NCBI GenBank assembly: GCA_965240325.2
Contig: OZ251225.1
Location: 3,472,001-3,536,000, forward strand
DNA: 64,000 nt
Source of the DNA: Rebecca billardiae RCC1528
Taxonomy: Eukaryota; Protista; Haptophyta
Direction of reading: 5' to 3'
The notes beneath the pieces are model-generated. The model was not told where the DNA came from, made no database searches, and saw nothing but the letters and a program-made list of their open reading frames with translations. Below, piece by piece: positions 2,283 through 63,260 of the stretch; the first letter of the stretch is position 1, and each line of letters opens with the position of its first letter. The position numbers and the translations under genes are program-made.

Positions 2283-2705
2283 ATAACTGGTCCGCGGATA
2301 TGACAATGGCCGGATGATTATAGGCGGCGGCTACTAGTACTAGTAATAATTGTCATGGACATATATTGTCTAGCTGTAGTCATAGTGCAGGCACATTAGA
2401 CTCATGAGTACTGACTACTAGTGTGACCCGCAGCATAATTCCGCTGCCGGGCTGCCAGCCGTGGCCGTGATCAAAACCGATCAAAATGACTCAGTAGCTT
2501 ACTATCAAACATTAGTGACGCTGCGGCGGAGGACGAGACAGCAGGTTCAGTCATTCGTCTTATTGACCTTCGACGCTTTCTGAGTCTCAGTCTCCGATCC
2601 ATCATCCGTAATCGATCATGCGCGGCTGCAGGCGCATCAAGCCACCGTAGACCGCTCCTGCGAGCAGCCGTACCGGGCAACTGACAGACGAACTGACGCG
2701 AGCGA
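2283..2705 (-). pseudogene. Decayed tandem duplicate of the aquaporin 3' end and downstream sequence (partner copy 2714-3043)
   Basis: 2516-2705 aligns to 2902-3043 with 9 insertions and 2 substitutions. ATAACTGGTCCGCGGAT starts both units (2283 and 2714). Confidence 0.9.
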
Positions 2706-2929
2706 TAACACTCATAACTGGTCCGCGGATGACGATGCCAAGTGGCCCGTCGGATGAGTACTGTGATGAGTTACTGACTTACTGAGTACATGGCGCGGAT
2801 TAACAGATGATTACGCTGCCAGTGTGAGTGTCGACGGATCCGATGACGAGTATTGACGACATGAGTCGCATTCGGCCAGCATAGCTATATATAAATTATA
2901 ATGACGCTGCGGCGGAGGACGAGACAGGT

Positions 2930-3607
2930 TCAGTCATTCTTGCCCTTCGACGCTTTCTGAGCAGCCTCCATCATGCGCGGCTGCAGGCGCAAGCCACCGT
3001 AGACCGCTCCTGCGAGCAGCGTACCGGGCAATGACGCGAGCGAGCCGCACGTGTCCGCGTTGAGCATGGCCGTGACTGCGGTGTAGGCTGGGTTCATGGA
3101 GACGGGGATGCCGAACATGCCAGGGCACACGAAACCGGCGACGATGGAGCCAGTTATCTCAGGAATATACGGCATTCCCGCCTCGAAAATTGCCACCAGG
3201 AGCAATGTCACTGCGAATGCCTCTGTGGCGGCGGCATGGTGCATTGGCACGTGCGTGGCGAATGGAATGGTGCCCACCTGTGCGACGGTGGTGTCTGGTA
3301 GCGCCGACAGAGCCCAGACGAGAATGGCCGGCGCGACGACCATCTGACCAACGAAGCGCGCGAGCGCGTCGGCCTTTGGCACGACCCCAGCAGCCGCCAA
3401 CGTCAGTGTTACCATCGGGCTGAAGTGCGCGTCCATCTGTAGCCACCCGTTCGTGACACCAACGATGCGGAGGAATACAATGATGACCCCATTCGCCACC
3501 CACGCATTAGGGAAGGGCCAGCTTGGAAGCGAGAGGAAGAACCCCAGGACGAACGACGTGAAGACGGCTTCGATCGCGACCAGCGCGAGCAACTTCGTCG
3601 TCGGCAT
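2930..3607 (-). CDS. Aquaporin/MIP-family channel, divergent (SIP/unorthodox-like)
   Basis: 225 aa with about 6 hydrophobic segments. Loop B reads DAHFSPMVTL (SPM in place of NPA); loop E reads SMNPAYT; conserved E in TM1 and TM4 (AIEAVFT, ATEAFAV). Confidence 0.75.
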   Translation of the reverse strand: MPTTKLLALVAIEAVFTSFVLGFFLSLPSWPFPNAWVANGVIIVFLRIVGVTNGWLQMDAHFSPMVTLTLAAAGVVPKADALARFVGQMVVAPAILVWALSALPDTTVAQVGTIPFATHVPMHHAAATEAFAVTLLLVAIFEAGMPYIPEITGSIVAGFVCPGMFGIPVSMNPAYTAVTAMLNADTCGSLASLPGTLLAGAVYGGLRLQPRMMEAAQKASKGKND

Positions 3608-4083: not shown

Positions 4084-4340
4084 CTGACGCATCACTTAGA
4101 TTGAGACTGTATGTACTGCAGTAGCCTCCGCCTTTATACACGGTCCTTGCCGCTGGCTAAACGCCTGAGTCGCCTGACTACTAGTGTCTAGTTGAAACGT
4201 GACGGCACTACGTCTACCGCCATCTGTCCATCACCAGCGGGTGACCCGTCCGAGACCGAGTGCTGAGCTGCGACGTAGGGTCGGCGCTGAGCTGCCAGTG
4301 TGCAGCGCAAGTGTTGCGTGTCACGTCACCGTGTCATCGA

Positions 4341-6842: not shown

Positions 6843-9800
6843 TCATCGATCATCCGACGACAGATCCAAAGACATGACTGTCCAATGGTCGTCGTCAGAT
6901 TCAGCAGTGTGACCTGTGTCGTCGCCGTGTGGTGGTACTGTTCGGAGGTAACCTGCACCGTTGCATCTCTCTAGCAGCGGTCTCAAGACCCCTGAGCTGT
7001 GACGCGCTTCGGAGCCGCCAGCATCGTCGACCAGGGCCCTGCTTGCCGTCACCACAGGCGCGACCTGTGGCGGTTGCTGCCGTCCTGCACCTGCTCCAGC
7101 CGCCATTGATGATAATGGTAGTGCTGGCGCAACGGTGGTGTTGATGCCTGCTGGTAGTCCCTGGTCGTAGATGCCAGCCCAGCCAGGCGCAGCCCGGGTT
7201 GTGTCACCTGCATTGCCACACAGATGCTGCTCGTCCAGGGCCCAGGCACCACCATAACCATTGACCATCCAGTCGCCAACCGGATGGACCGTGCCATATG
7301 GAGAGACCAGTGGTATGCCGACTGCCACCAGTGGCGTGCCAACTGCCACCAGTGGCGTGCCAACTGCCACCAGTGGAGTGCCAACTGCCACCAGTGGCGG
7401 CGGTGGCGATAGCAGCGGCGCGACGTCCGAAACGGCGGTAATGTTGCTGCTGTGAGTGTGCCGTCGCGGCGCGGCGCACCTCGCCTGGTCACCGGTGCCA
7501 TGCTCCACTGCGACCAGTGGCGGCGGTGACGTGAGCGGCGGCACGACGTCCGAAACGGCGGCAATGTGGCTGCTGTGAGTGTGCCGTCGCGGCGCGGCGC
7601 ACCTAGCCTGGTCACCGGTGCCATGCTCCACTGCGACCAGTGGCGGCGGTGACGTGAGCAGCGGCGCGACGTCCGAAACGGCGGCAATGTGGCTGCTGTG
7701 AGTGTGCCGTCGCGGCGCGGCGCACCTAGCCTGGTCACCGGTGCCGTGCTCCACTGCAACCAGTGGCGGCGGTGACGTGAGCAGCGGCGCGACGTCCGAA
7801 ACGGCGGCAATATGGCTGCTGTGAGTGCACCGTCGCTTCGCGGAGCGCGTGCCCTGGTCACCGGTGCCGTGCTCCAGCCTGCGCTTGGGGACGCTCACCA
7901 CGTTCACCATGCCGGCCAGCTTGTGCGTGGCGCACCGGCTGGCGCGCTTCTCGCCCTGCATGCCGAACGAAGGATGCTTGGTGCAGCCGGCATGATCACA
8001 CATGCGGTTCATCACGTCGACCATGCCGGCCAGCTTGTGCGAGGCGCACCGGCTGGCGCGCTTCTCGCCCGGCATGCCGAACACAGGCTGCTTGGTGCAG
8101 CCCGCATGATCACACTTGCGGCTCCTCACGTTGATCATGCCGGTCAGCTTGTGCGTAGCGCACCGGCTGGCGCGAGCGTCGCCCGGCATGCCGAACGCAG
8201 GCCCCTTGGTGCAGCCCGCGTGATCACACATGCCGCTCCTCACGTTGATCATGCCGGTCAGCTTGTGCGTAGCACACCGGCTGGCGCGCGCGTCGCCCGC
8301 CATGCCGAACGCAGGCTGCTTGGTGCAGCCAGCGTGATCACACATGGGGCTCACCACGTTCACCATGCCGGCCAGCTTGTGCGTAGCGCACCGGCTGGCG
8401 CGCGCGTCGCCCGGCATGCCGTACGAAGGCCCCTTGGTGCAGCCATCGTGATGACACGCTAGGCTCTTCACGTTGACCATGCCGGCCAGCTTGTGCGTAG
8501 CGCACCGGCTGGCACGCGCGTCGCCCGGCATACCAAAGTAAGGCCGTGTGGTGCAGCCAGCGTGATCGCACGTGCGGTTCTTCATGTCGACCATGCCGGC
8601 CAGCTTGTGCGTAGCGCACCGGCTGGGGCGCGAGTTGCCCGGCATGCCGAACGAAGGCCGTGTGGTGCAGCCCGCGTGATCACACGTGGGGCTCTTCACG
8701 TTCACCATGCCGGCCAGCTTGTGCGTAACGCACCGGCTGGCGCGCTCGTCACCCGGCATACCAAAGTAAGGCCGTGTGGTGCAGCCAGCGTGATCGCACG
8801 TGCGGTTCTTCATGTCGACCATGCCGGCCAGCTTGTGCGTAGCGCACCGGCTGGGGCGCGAGTTGCCCGGCATGCCGAACGAAGGCTGCTTGATGCAGCC
8901 GCCGTGATCACACAGGAGGCTCACCACGTCTACCATGCCGGCCAGCTTGTGCGCAGCGCACCGGCTGGCGCGTGCGTCGCCCGGCATGCCGAACGAAGGC
9001 CCCTTGGCGCAGCCATCGTGATCGCACTGGGGGCTCACCACGTTGACCATGCCTGCCAGCTTGTGCGTAGCGCATCGGCTGGCGCGCGCGTCGCCCGGCT
9101 TGCCGTACGAAGGCCCCTTGGTGCAGCCATCGTGATGACACATCGTGCGCTTCGCCACGCAGACCATGCCGGCCAGCTTGTGCGCAGCGCACCGGCTGGG
9201 GCGCGCGCCCGGCATGCCGAATGAAGGCCCCGTGGTGCAGTCCGCGTGATCACACGTGGGGCTCCTCACGTCGACCATGCCGGCCAGCTTGTGCACAGCG
9301 CACCGGCTGGCGCGCGCGCCCGGCATGCCGAATGAAGGCCGTGTGGTGCAGTCCGCGTGATCACACTTGGGGCTCCTCACGTTGACCATGCCGGCCAGCT
9401 TGTGCGTAGCGCACCGGCTGGCGCGCTTCTCGCCCGGCATGCCGAACGCAGGCTGCTTGGTGCAGCCGGCGTGATCACACGTGGGGCTCACCACGTTCAC
9501 CATGCCGGCCAGCTTGTGCGTAGCGCACCGGCTGGCGCGCGAGTCGCCCGCCATGCCTAACGAAGCATGCTTGGTGCAGCCCTCGTGATCGCACTTGGCG
9601 TACCTCATGTCAGCCATGCCGGCCAGCTTGTGCGTAGCGCACCGGCTGGCGCGCTTCTCGCCCGGCATGCCGAACGCAGGCCCCTTGGCGCAGCCCTCGT
9701 GATCACACTTGCGGCTCACCACGTTCACCATGCCGGCCAGCTTGTGCGTAGCGCACCAGCTGGCGCGCTTCTCGCCCGGCATGCCGAATGAAGGCACCGT

Positions 9801-10109
9801 GGTGCAGCCCGCGTGATCACACCTGCGGTTCACCACGTTCACCATGCCGGCCAGCTTGTGCGTAGCGCACCGGCTGGCGCGCTTCTCGCCCGGCATGCCG
9901 AATGAAGGCGCCGTGGTGCAGCCCGCGTGATCACACATGCGGCTCTGCACATTGATCATGCCAGCCAGCTTGTGCGCAGCGCACTGGCTGGCGCGCGCGT
10001 CGCCCGGCGGAAGCCCGGGTGGGCGCGTGGAAAGGACGAGCTCGAGAGGCGTCGAGCCCCGCGCGCGCGGTTTCATTCGCTCAGGCGGCGAATCTCCACG
10101 CTCGCCCAT
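6843..10109 (-). CDS. EsV-1-7-type cysteine-rich repeat protein: 18 full repeats plus an N-terminal half repeat, then a KRR basic motif and a repetitive Pro/Thr/His tail
   Basis: Tandem ~38-aa units C-x4-C-x~16-C-x2-H-K-x2-G-M-V-N-V match the EsV-1-7 motif. The start is uncertain (ATG at 10109 or 10076). The ORF-track extension to 10331 overlaps the MATE gene antisense and is probably not real. Confidence 0.8.
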   Translation of the reverse strand: MGERGDSPPERMKPRARGSTPLELVLSTRPPGLPPGDARASQCAAHKLAGMINVQSRMCDHAGCTTAPSFGMPGEKRASRCATHKLAGMVNVVNRRCDHAGCTTVPSFGMPGEKRASWCATHKLAGMVNVVSRKCDHEGCAKGPAFGMPGEKRASRCATHKLAGMADMRYAKCDHEGCTKHASLGMAGDSRASRCATHKLAGMVNVVSPTCDHAGCTKQPAFGMPGEKRASRCATHKLAGMVNVRSPKCDHADCTTRPSFGMPGARASRCAVHKLAGMVDVRSPTCDHADCTTGPSFGMPGARPSRCAAHKLAGMVCVAKRTMCHHDGCTKGPSYGKPGDARASRCATHKLAGMVNVVSPQCDHDGCAKGPSFGMPGDARASRCAAHKLAGMVDVVSLLCDHGGCIKQPSFGMPGNSRPSRCATHKLAGMVDMKNRTCDHAGCTTRPYFGMPGDERASRCVTHKLAGMVNVKSPTCDHAGCTTRPSFGMPGNSRPSRCATHKLAGMVDMKNRTCDHAGCTTRPYFGMPGDARASRCATHKLAGMVNVKSLACHHDGCTKGPSYGMPGDARASRCATHKLAGMVNVVSPMCDHAGCTKQPAFGMAGDARASRCATHKLTGMINVRSGMCDHAGCTKGPAFGMPGDARASRCATHKLTGMINVRSRKCDHAGCTKQPVFGMPGEKRASRCASHKLAGMVDVMNRMCDHAGCTKHPSFGMQGEKRASRCATHKLAGMVNVVSVPKRRLEHGTGDQGTRSAKRRCTHSSHIAAVSDVAPLLTSPPPLVAVEHGTGDQARCAAPRRHTHSSHIAAVSDVAPLLTSPPPLVAVEHGTGDQARCAAPRRHTHSSHIAAVSDVVPPLTSPPPLVAVEHGTGDQARCAAPRRHTHSSNITAVSDVAPLLSPPPPLVAVGTPLVAVGTPLVAVGTPLVAVGIPLVSPYGTVHPVGDWMVNGYGGAWALDEQHLCGNAGDTTRAAPGWAGIYDQGLPAGINTTVAPALPLSSMAAGAGAGRQQPPQVAPVVTASRALVDDAGGSEARHSSGVLRPLLERCNGAGYLRTVPPHGDDTGHTAESDDDHWTVMSLDLSSDDR
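7320..7397 (-). repeat. 21-bp coding minisatellite (LVAVGTP) x~4
   Basis: ACTGCCACCAGTGGCGTGCCA repeated. Confidence 0.9.
7390..7878 (-). repeat. ~120-bp coding tandem repeat x~4 (EHGTGDQARCAAPRRHTHSSHIAAVSDVAPLLTSPPPLVAV)
   Basis: Near-identical units visible in both DNA and protein. Confidence 0.9.
7890..10008 (-). repeat. ~114-bp coding tandem array (EsV-1-7 units)
   Basis: GTGATCACAC and CATGCCGGCCAGCTTGTGCG recur with a period of about 114 bp. Confidence 0.95.
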
Positions 10110-18569: not shown

Positions 18570-18735
18570 ACACCTAGCCGAGTAGCAGTACTGTACTGGC
18601 GTGCTCTTGCGTCTGAGGTCATGGGTTCAAACCCCCAGTTTCCAGGTCTCTCTTCGGAGAGCGTGCGATGAAGGATGGCGCGGCAACCTGCCACCGTGAG
18701 CCTTATACGCACGTTATTCGTTAAAACAAATAAAC
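18570..18735 (+). mobile_element. Putative tRNA-derived SINE or structured Pol III RNA
   Basis: A-box-like TAGCCGAGTAG (18575). GAGGTCATGGGTTCAAACCCC resembles a variable loop plus T-arm/B-box (18615-18635). No acceptor stem. Downstream hairpins and an A-rich tail. Confidence 0.5.
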
Positions 18736-28184: not shown

Positions 28185-28305
28185 CTATGATGATGTAAAG
28201 ACACAGGCACGAGGGCGCAGCTCTCCTGATTCGTCTGTCGTGGTACTGGTCGAAGCTTGAGGTAGTGGTGGTGTGAGCACGTTGACGGTTGATCGCCAGG
28301 GATGA
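28185..28305. repeat. Dispersed repeat, copy 1 (copy 2 at 60951-61089; short copy at 14330-14351)
   Basis: 45 identical nt at 28196-28240 and 60959-61003, with patchy similarity beyond. Confidence 0.85.
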
Positions 28306-44911: not shown

Positions 44912-45410
44912 ATGGCGAGGCTGCCGGGCGACGCGCGCGCCAGCCAGTGTGATCACACCGGCTGCACCACGAGGCCTAATTTCGGTATGCCGAGCTACGC
45001 GCGCGCCAGCCGGTGCGCTAGACACAAGCTGGCAGGCATGGTCGATGTGAGGACGTCCAAGTGTGATCACGCGGGCTGCACCACGCGGCCTTCCTTCGGC
45101 ATGCCGGGCGACGCGCGCGCCAGCCGGTGCGCTACGCACAAGCTGGCCGACATGGTCAACGTGAGGCACCCCAAGTGTGATCACACCGGCTGCACCAAGC
45201 AGCCTTCGTTCGGCATGCCGGGTGACGCGCTCCCCGCAGCCGGTGCGCTATGCACAAGCTGGGCAGCATGGTATGCAGTCGGCTCGCCGTCCCCAAGCGC
45301 AGGCTGGAGCATGGCACCGGGGACCAGGGCACGCGCGCCGCGTTGTGCCGGCACAAACACGCCAGCCACCTTGTATCACTGAGTCTGATGTATCGGACGC
45401 CGCGCCGCAG
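44912..45410 (+). pseudogene. Short, frameshifted EsV-1-7 repeat gene copy (3 units plus the start of the tail)
   Basis: PGDARASQCDHTGCTTRPNFG... The third unit is frameshifted. PKRRLEHGTGDQGTR (from ~45292) and VSDAAP appear in shifted frames and match the tail of 6843-10109. Confidence 0.82.
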
Positions 45411-60135: not shown

Positions 60136-60316
60136 GCGACGAGCTCACGTAGTGCTCCGGACTCGGCTCGCCCTTGCGCGCTCCTCCTCGAGCGACGAAC
60201 GCGCCCGCGGGTAGGTTGTTGGGCGCGCGCCGACTTGGCGTGACTCGGCCACGCGGCCCGGCAAGACGACAGACCGGTGGGCGCGCTCGGTGAGAGCGGA
60301 GCGCGAGGGCTGGGCG

Positions 60317-60740
60317 AGACGGAGTACGGACGCGGGGCCGCCCTGCGAGGCGACAGGCGCGCTCGGGGAGAGCAGAGTGCGAGGGCGAGAGGCAGCGGCC
60401 GGCCGGCCCCCGCCACCACCTCGCGCACCGCGGCGTACTGCGGCGGCACGCGCACGCACGGTCCCCGGTCCGAGTCAAGGGCTCCATCCACGCGTCGCGC
60501 GGCTCGCGCCGGCGCGTACCGGCGCGAGTTGTGAGACGGAGTAGACGCGGGGCCTGTGAGGCGACAGGCGCGCTCGGGGAGAGCAGAGTGCGAGGGCGAG
60601 AGGCAGCGGCCGGCCGGCCCCCGCCACCACCTCGCGCACCGCGGCGTACTGCGGCGGCACGCGCACGCACGGTCCCCGGTCCGAGTCAAGGGCTCCACCA
60701 CGCGTCGCGACTCGCGCCGGCGCGTACCGGCGCGAGTCGT
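60317..60740. repeat. Tandem duplication, ~210-bp unit x2
   Basis: 60317-60534 and 60535-60740 are near-identical. Confidence 0.92.
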
Positions 60741-60950: not shown

Positions 60951-61089
60951 CTATGATTTAAAGACACAGGCACGAGGGCGCAGCTCTCCTGATTCGTCTG
61001 TCGAAGTACTGATTGGAGACAGAGGGTGTGAGCGCGTTCGGGCCGCGGGTGAGGACCTAGTCGTCGTCGATGCCGGATGCCCAGGGATG
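60951..61089. repeat. Dispersed repeat, copy 2 (see 28185-28305)
   Basis: 45-nt identity with 28196-28240. Confidence 0.85.
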
Positions 61090-61369: not shown

Positions 61370-63260
61370 CTCGAAAAAGCGAAAACTCACCCTCCAACAG
61401 CCCTCAAAATCGTCCCCCGTCCCCTTTTCTTTGATCAAAAGATCGTCTTTTAGTTTTTGACAACGTAGTGAGGGCCCCCGGCGGGGCTCCACGCTACGCG
61501 CTCCGCCCTACACCGCGGGCCATAATATTTTAGTTCATCAGTTACTCGCAGAGTAGTGGCTCAGAAGAGTCGCGTGAGTGACTGGCTGATGGCGATGCTG
61601 CTCGGCTGCCTGCATGTGAGATCGAATTATATGGCGGGCGCAATAATATATATTAGCCCGTAGTCCATAGCTTATGGCCCGCGGTGCAGGGCGGAGCGCG
61701 CAGCGTGGAGCCCGCACCAGCGGGCCCGAACCACGTTTCAAAAAGATCTTTGATCAAAGAAAAAAGGGACGGGGCGGTGTTTTCCAGAGTGGGGAGACCG
61801 AGTTTCGATTTTTTGAGACCTCCTTACACATGGATTAAGCGTCGAAAAAGGTCGCGCCCGCCGTCTTGAATAGTGAACAGAGGAATCAACGAAACCCACG
61901 CCCAAGTGTGCCAGGCTGGGTAAATTTTGTGGGTAGACTCTCGTTCATGTGTGATAGTTTGCCTCTGCCTTGATGAATATGTCATATGAACTTGGCTTCG
62001 CGGCGGTTGGTATCTAGAGTCTAAAACCCGCAAGCCTTATTGAAAATACCCGCGCAGCTATTCGTTGCCAGCCCATTCCATAGTCACTGACTTACCGAGC
62101 TGGCGAGCTCAAAACCTGCCGCCGTCGCAAGCACGTGCGCAGGTTTCTTCGGGGGTGGCGAGCGAGCCGCGACGACTCTTGGTCCAAGGGGGCGCTCGAT
62201 GGGCAGGTGCGCGTGGCGAGTGCCGAGTGGCGCCTGGAGCGCGCGTCTGCGGCGGGTCCCGACGGCCGTCGACATCGCGTTCGTGCCCGCTCACTAGTCA
62301 CTCCGCACGCCCCTGCCGCGCCCTGTCGATGCCTGCGCGGCCGGCCGCGCGGCCGCGCCGCCGCCGCCGCAGCCGCCGCCCTGTGTTCGGGCTCTCGCAA
62401 GCTCGGGGGCAGCGGCGCAAGTGATGCCGGACTGATCGATCTCTGAGTCTCCGACTTCACCACACGCCCCCCTTGCCATGCCTCTCCGCCAGGGTCTCCC
62501 AGAACTCTTCTTCAGAGCAGGCGCAAGTCGAACTGGCCGCGGCCCCGGCGCCGTCGGCTCGATCCCCGTGGCTGTCAGCTCCGCGTGGCCTTCAGGGCGC
62601 CTGGCGTGCCACTGCCCAGAGCTGGCCGTGCCTCTGCGACGCGTGCCGAGCCTGACCGAGGTGTGTCACCCCGTGCACGCGCGGCGCGCGCAAGCACCGG
62701 TGCTGCATGGCTGCTCGCACCGTGCTCCCTGGCTCGGTCAGTCAGCTCAGGCCGCGTGGGCCTGGTGTGCACGTAGAGTCGCGCTCATGCGTCGCTCACG
62801 CCTCGCGCCCGCCTGTCGGCCGTCGCGCAGGCGCGCAGGTCGAACCCTACTGACCTGCAGATCATGGCCCGCGGTGCAGGGCGGAGCGCGCAGCGTGGAG
62901 CCCGCACCAGCGGGCCCGAACCACGTTTCAAAAAGATCTTTGATCAAAGAAAAAAGGGACGGGGGACGATTTTCAGGGCTGGAGGAGACCGAGTTTCGAA
63001 TTTCGAGACTCCCTTACAGGTGCATCCTCGTCGAAAAAGGGCGCGTCCGCCGTCTTGAATAGTGAACAGAGGAATCAACGAAACCCGCGCCCAAGTGTGC
63101 GAGGCAGGGTAATTGTGGGTAGACTCTCCTTAATGTAGTGTGACCATAGTAAAATAATATGGCCTCGCCGCTGCAAGATGCCAAGAACGACCGTTGACAT
63201 AATCGTCCAACCAACTCCAATAGTGCGAGAGATTGAAAATACCCGCCGCAGCTATCCGTA
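61370..63260. mobile_element. Cluster of non-coding repeat or transposon-terminus-like copies: inverted copy ~61370-61524, direct copies ~61673-62066 and ~62863-63260
   Basis: ATGGCCCGCGGTGCAGGGCGGAGCGCGCAGCGTGGAGCCC...TCTTTGATCAAAGA...GGGACGGGG is identical over more than 100 nt in the two direct copies, which lie ~1190 bp apart. The inverted copy is more diverged. Confidence 0.6.

Follow-up and report, generated by a model that had tools for sequence, protein, structure and literature searches.

Clean excision footprints of DNA transposons as the probable leading form of intergenic mutation in the haptophyte Rebecca billardiae

The small insertions that enlarge a dead gene copy and the intergenic DNA of the haptophyte Rebecca billardiae RCC1528 are probably excision footprints of cut-and-paste DNA transposons, whose repeated insertion and excision would be the dominant form of intergenic mutation in this alga. 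Our analysis covers a window of 64,000 nucleotides (contig OZ251225.1 of assembly GCA_965240325.2, positions 3,472,001 to 3,536,000 of the forward strand), in whose intergenic DNA footprints outnumber substitutions by about 3-5 fold per site. The types of scar are known from other systems. What appears to be new is the regime, in which clean, net-gain footprints with a 7-bp geometry are the leading intergenic mutation, are still segregating and are also seen in a second haptophyte.

An intact aquaporin-like gene is followed by a dead tandem copy of its 3' part (Table 1). The protein is very divergent, with SPM at the first NPA position, and has no match in Pfam or the PDB; ESM Atlas features link it to MIP clusters (0.92). 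Its sole homolog among 5.8 billion proteins, within length limits, is a Chrysoculter rhomboideus protein with 65% identity. Close homologs of the adjoining SnoaL gene exist in Diacronema lutheri and Pavlovales sp. CCMP2436. The DNA is GC-rich, and these homologs place it probably within the Pavlovales. The gene that follows SnoaL in L007 was rejected as the aquaporin ortholog, which leaves the locus without a syntenic outgroup.

Alignment confirmed the proposal of a preliminary description of this DNA that 2516-2705 (190 nt) is a dead copy of 2902-3043 (142 nt), and its count of nine insertions (48 nt in total), two substitutions (positions 2566 and 2591) and no deletions was recovered in full on realignment. 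The default aligner fuses adjoining gaps and reports six instead of nine, and nested events probably raise the number of insertions to about 12. The duplicated unit exceeds the compared stretch, its two copies starting at 2283 and 2714, and the two flank copies are barely alignable: their score of 31.8, against 12 +/- 7 in shuffles, was matched by 3 of 500 dinucleotide shuffles but by 34 of 500 trinucleotide shuffles. Because the intact frame is gap-free against the Chrysoculter protein at six of the nine sites, these six are polarised as insertions in the dead copy; the CAG, GTC and ATT insertions, located at the extreme C-terminus or past the stop codon, are polarised by parsimony alone. That all nine indels are insertions has p = 0.002 under a 50:50 expectation, and at least nine indels in 11 events has p ~ 1e-7 if indels make up 11% of events, at a locus that was picked as striking.

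The preliminary description had called for the insertions to be checked against read data, and the dead copy is recovered without any difference in short-read contigs. One of these, a Logan contig from run X1, spans 2457-2834 with 0 mismatched letters and 0 gaps, and contig L001 (ERR14847148) is identical to positions 1-2667; these are separate short-read assemblies, though either may derive from the source strain. Additionally, identical proteins are encoded on Logan contigs of runs ERR14847148-51. Nothing was found in favour of an assembly or consensus artefact as the origin of the insertions, and the exact match refutes it, so that its probability is practically negligible.

The individual insertions fit the junction rules of hairpin-type excision (Table 1), which supports the earlier comparison with excision footprints and P-nucleotides. 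Of the five insertions of 3 nt, four consist of a 2-bp duplication plus a complementary base, a rule obeyed by 6.9% of random 3-mers, and the rule that describes the 5-nt insertion holds for 1.7% of random 5-mers. The blunt rule was first derived from the dead copy itself, and its independent tests are the window-wide and polymorphism tests alone. The excision reading has its weak points: TCT is unparsed, as are parts of the two longest inserts (13 and 14 nt), automated nested parsing having left these two and the junction inserts without a complete solution, and the required rate is very high.

Table 1. Positions of the features discussed, numbered within the window
Position	Strand	Feature	Reading or basis
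2930-3607	-	Aquaporin-like (divergent MIP) gene, intact; ancestral state for the dead copy	ORF, homolog, ESM Atlas features
2714-3043		Source unit that was duplicated in tandem	3' flank, stop codon and last 38 codons
2283-2705		Dead tandem copy of the 2714-3043 unit	Enlarged by insertions
2542-2564		CAG, GTC and ATT insertions, 3 nt each (2542-2544, 2557-2559, 2562-2564)	2-bp duplication plus complement of the adjacent base (blunt-hairpin P-nucleotide rule)
2585-2587		TCT insertion	Fits neither hairpin rule
2596-2600		5-nt insertion	3-bp duplication with one P-nucleotide on each side (or a 2-nt P arm)
2606-2619		14-nt insertion	7-bp double-transversion footprint with a nested 5-bp one, 2 nt left over; post hoc parse
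2637-2639		TCA insertion	2-bp duplication plus complementary base
2669		1-nt duplication	Uninformative
2681-2693		13-nt insertion	Tentative: +1, then 9-bp double transversion, then +3 unexplained
4101-4113		Two segregating footprints	Short alleles in the window, long in L019
13421-13427		Segregating 7-bp double-complement (double-transversion) footprint, exact	Short allele in the window, long in L010
61445-61447		2-bp duplication plus complementary base	In one of three repeat-end copies
800-62150		Intergenic blocks with intact footprint signatures	Listed double-transversion sites: 21 of 7 bp, 6 of 9 bp

The same signature is present throughout the intergenic DNA of the window (~15-16 kb). In the double-complement pattern, X U a b U Y, the repeat U flanks a base a that is the complement of Y and a base b that is the complement of X. 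Repeats of 7 bp with both junction bases complemented, as in Ac/Ds scars, number 22 where 1.4 are expected, whereas control 7-bp repeats with neither junction base complemented are not enriched (7 vs 4.7). Double-complement counts are also raised at 9 bp (6 vs 0.1), 6 bp (14 vs 5.8) and 8 bp (3 vs 0.5), with little or no excess at 3-5 bp and none at 3-4 bp, and coding DNA has 5 such repeats against 6.6 expected. Given a 7-bp repeat, both junctions are complementary in 24 of 62 cases against an expected 1/9 (p = 1.7e-8), and one-sided junction variants likewise prefer the complement (19-20 vs 4-7). In the shorter class, a 2-bp duplication plus complementary base is found at 1.96-fold of expectation and other fillers at 0.78-fold; with trinucleotide shuffles the figures are 1.63-fold and 1.10-fold. 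The complement signatures persist when blocks are defined objectively from gene to gene, and also in 1.3 kb beyond the window. TA-CWG-TA is the footprint consensus of Tc1/mariner elements, and such mariner-type scars are enriched as well (9 vs 1.5-2.3, intergenic) as a minority class that has no member in the dead copy.

These counts bear on ordinary replication slippage with template switching in simple DNA. Slippage could produce the perfect short duplications that are enriched at periods 3-7, and it would account for CAG (the only perfect tandem duplication among CAG, GTC and ATT) and the 1-nt event, which are the two perfect tandem copies among the nine dead-copy insertions. The other seven are imperfect as duplications. 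Under slippage no complement rule would be expected, and fillers that are not complementary show no enrichment; counts should also fall steadily with length, but the 7-bp class exceeds those of 5, 6 and 8 bp. Slippage is therefore quite unlikely as the explanation and is refuted as the main cause by the junction tests and the segregating alleles, though it may make a minority contribution.

The 7- and 9-bp peaks with complemented junction bases point to transposases rather than the undescribed repair system that the preliminary description had favoured. An alternative is host break repair, in which cuts by trapped topoisomerase II/VI or Spo11 would be filled in during end-joining by Pol X or Pol theta, enzymes also named in the preliminary description. 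Perfect period-4 repeats are indeed mildly enriched (106 vs 56-69, 1.5-1.9-fold), convergent 3' flanks are the richest in sites, and the unparsed inserts could be templated fill. Topoisomerase II duplications measure 2-5 bp with a peak at 4 bp (bioRxiv 10.1101/2020.05.03.075358), and they share with the present scars the formation of short duplications without a prior repeat, via end-joining; however, they show no complemented junctions, and here the strongest excess is at 7 bp, complemented, and double-transversion sites are not in excess at 3-4 bp. Since introns are also spared and the length varies between haptophytes, we consider host break repair improbable. A CACTA-like 3-bp target with offset hairpins was also tried as the source of the main 3-nt class and was rejected, the offset filler at period 3 occurring 136 times against 167; the missing excess at 3-4 bp disfavours it further, though one segregating 3-nt event fits.

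The distribution of the scars is uneven. Introns have the 2-bp duplication plus complementary base at 1.09-fold of expectation, in a test powered for the 3-nt class only (2.2 kb of introns), and coding DNA shows no filler preference. Double-transversion sites number 36 in 10.9 kb near 3' ends against 9 in 5.2 kb near 5' ends. Convergent spacers reach 2.5 kb and divergent spacers measure 155-281 nt, as expected if footprints lengthen 3' flanks. Some dead DNA decays otherwise than by insertion alone: the dead fragment (44920-45290) of an EsV-1-7 repeat gene (6843-10100) is interrupted by stops, has lost 47 nt in a microhomology deletion and carries a 2-nt insertion, and 22 substitutions and 6 small gaps separate the members of the repeat pair 61674/62864. 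The idea of a host mutator that acts on all unconstrained DNA, also put forward earlier, is not supported, as introns are without the 3-nt class and the relic and the repeat pair diverge by substitutions and a deletion.

Direct evidence of ongoing change comes from a second sample, ERR14847151, of which contigs L010, L018 and L019 (10.0 kb) were compared with the window. They differ by 3 SNPs, all genic, 1 microsatellite length change and 3 intergenic indels, with no SNP across ~2.3 kb of intergenic DNA. ERR14847151 carries the longer allele at all three indels, two of which are 7-bp footprints; the event at ~4101-4107 combines a 7-bp target and a double transversion with one P-nucleotide (palindromic base), 8 nt in all, and that at ~4111 is a one-sided 3-nt event. 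The direction of change at the three sites was taken from the junction rules, and the long allele could be ancestral. The resulting ~1.3 footprints/kb vs 0.4 SNPs/kb, in small numbers, is near the 9:2 of the dead copy. No filled allele, with an element at a footprint site, was seen in the 10 kb of the second sample, and contigs L011-L014 and L020 are identical to the window. The earlier view that insertion dominates over substitution and deletion at this locus is hence borne out by the contigs and by the segregating indels as real and ongoing.

The same data speak to a defence that recognises duplicated DNA and fills duplicates with insertions, for which the preliminary description had suggested an insertion-based counterpart of repeat-induced point mutation (RIP). 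In fungi, RIP is a homology-triggered C-to-T change. The likeness lies in the fast decay of a duplicate, and the dead copy is dense with insertions of which the coding copy has none; unlike RIP, the process here is neither homology-dependent nor based on substitution. Selection accounts for the clean coding copy, both the signature and the segregating events are found in single-copy intergenic DNA, the repeat pair 61674/62864 diverges mostly by substitutions, and arrays of 114 bp and 123 bp remain in register. We therefore regard a RIP-like defence as very improbable.

Under the excision reading, an element would insert and duplicate 7 bp of the target (less often 9, 6, 8 or 2-3 bp), and would later be excised via a hairpin on the flanking DNA. 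The host would open the hairpins near the tip and join the ends with little trimming. A hairpin tipped by the element-adjacent base would leave both junction bases complemented, as for Ac/Ds, and a flush hairpin would leave one complementary P-nucleotide, as for RAG. Each visit would add 3-9 nt, visits would be very frequent and elements would reside only briefly, so that a dead gene copy would serve as fresh neutral sequence in which the visits are recorded. Introns may be spared because the full-size inserted intermediate would be purged there, even were the final scar harmless. The junction rules, the length peaks, the segregating alleles and the lack of the 3-nt class in introns are observations; that transposases are the makers, together with their families and the short residence of the elements, is inferred, since the window contained neither a filled allele nor a transposase, nor an intact TIR element flanked by a target duplication. 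TIR and target-duplication scans of the window gave no convincing intact element, a Pfam scan of its intergenic ORFs gave no transposase and pattern scans of metagenomes gave no matches.

Hairpins formed by hAT enzymes are offset by one base and those formed by RAG are flush, RAG-fold enzymes being expected to cut flush, and the two footprint classes (offset 7-bp and flush 2-3-bp) match these geometries. Flank hairpins are formed by hAT, Transib, RAG and MULE enzymes (PMC5499845). Hairpin opening and end-joining give rise to Ac/Ds footprints, which are palindromic insertions with the complement of the element-adjacent base at their centre (PMC5873905). The intergenic scars work like those of Ac/Ds in their remnant target duplication, in junction bases replaced by complements (with two segregating cases) and in short odd palindromes (PMC5873905). 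They are not to be filed as canonical hAT scars, since 7 and 9 bp dominate here instead of 8 bp; hAT families with 7-bp target duplications are included in Repbase (PMC4455052). Also unlike Ac/Ds, there is almost no flank loss, the density outnumbers substitutions and no element is seen at the sites. P-nucleotides are a mark of the RAG reaction (PMC4840297), and RAG/Transib coding ends, where a flush hairpin leaves 1-2 complementary bases, fit the 3-nt and 5-nt classes (PMC4840297, PMC5499845). Canonical Transib elements differ in duplicating 5 bp where 2-3 bp is found here, and V(D)J-like deletion is not seen in these scars; Transib relatives with 2-3-bp duplications do exist (bioRxiv 10.64898/2026.08.26.747230).

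In grass genomes, the excision of DNA transposons is an acknowledged cause of mutation close to genes, and two rice species have ~4,000 polymorphic elements, with excisions that usually delete flanks and mostly leave deletions and filler (Roffler and Wicker 2015, PMC4423477). The scars described here are instead clean net gains, with a density of about one in 15 nt of neutral DNA, and rice excisions are far rarer. A literature search, with subscription papers mostly outside its scope, found no paper that joins haptophyte, DNA transposons, excision and footprint.

The pattern extends to Prymnesium parvum (L017, GCA_041296205.1), whose intergenic DNA has the double-complement pattern at 8 bp, the canonical hAT length (10 vs 0.2 expected), and is probably a second haptophyte field of hAT footprints. 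It also holds numerous related palindromic motifs, and eleven 8-bp double-complement repeats were noted at sites apart from one another. In small samples (0.7-6.9 kb) of D. lutheri, CCMP2436 and two other relatives, the signature is slight or absent. The intergenic DNA of D. lutheri contig L002 has small patches of similar palindrome-rich DNA at 742-860 and 1904-2030 and, elsewhere in this small sample, one 9-bp-type site.

These comparisons help to weigh a cargo-free nuclease, that is, a domesticated or orphaned transposase of hAT/RAG fold that makes staggered cuts and flank hairpins in intergenic DNA and leaves no lasting element. Such an enzyme would suit the great excess of footprints over standing elements in the window, the strong bias to 3' flanks and the very clean repair. 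Duplication followed by hairpins at the outer edge, however, requires two steps, fill-in and cleavage, which an element supplies naturally, and the several lengths (7, 9, 2-3 and TA), with another in P. parvum, suggest changing selfish families. Because the length varies with lineage and takes the canonical hAT value in P. parvum, selfish element families fit better than a fixed host enzyme, and we judge a cargo-free nuclease unlikely. A broader possibility, that scars without lasting insertions reflect a host-kept hAT-/RAG-fold nuclease or hit-and-run transposition at 3' flanks, as an intergenic insertion mutator shared by several haptophyte lineages, each with its own cut geometry, we hold to be doubtful.

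The idea that excision footprints generate diversity is an old one, but such footprints are usually rare and messy; here the proposal becomes directly testable, and the footprints are clean enough for the cut geometry of the enzyme to be derived from the genome alone. The approach amounts to a simple k-mer test for past or present transposase activity in any genome, and it was this test that revealed the 8-bp signature in P. parvum. Substitution-based methods for neutral rates, alignment and dating will misread the non-coding DNA of such algae.

Other repeats in the window were noted. A non-coding repeat is present as three copies or ends (61383-61526, 61674-62085 and 62864-63235) without target duplication; two copies share an identical first 100 nt and are ~85% alike in the remainder. 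A hAT identity for these repeat ends was considered and dropped, as there is no target duplication and the ends look Helitron-like. At 60316-60740 lies a tandem duplication of ~210 nt whose copies differ by 3 substitutions and 4 small indels, at all of which the first copy is longer; it is unpolarised, neither copy having been shown to be coding. The intergenic stretch at 18600-18650 is tRNA-like and is possibly a decayed tRNA or SINE. Finally, 28190-28248, 60953-61011 and ~14326 share a repeat end of 59 nt, with which a longer element begins.
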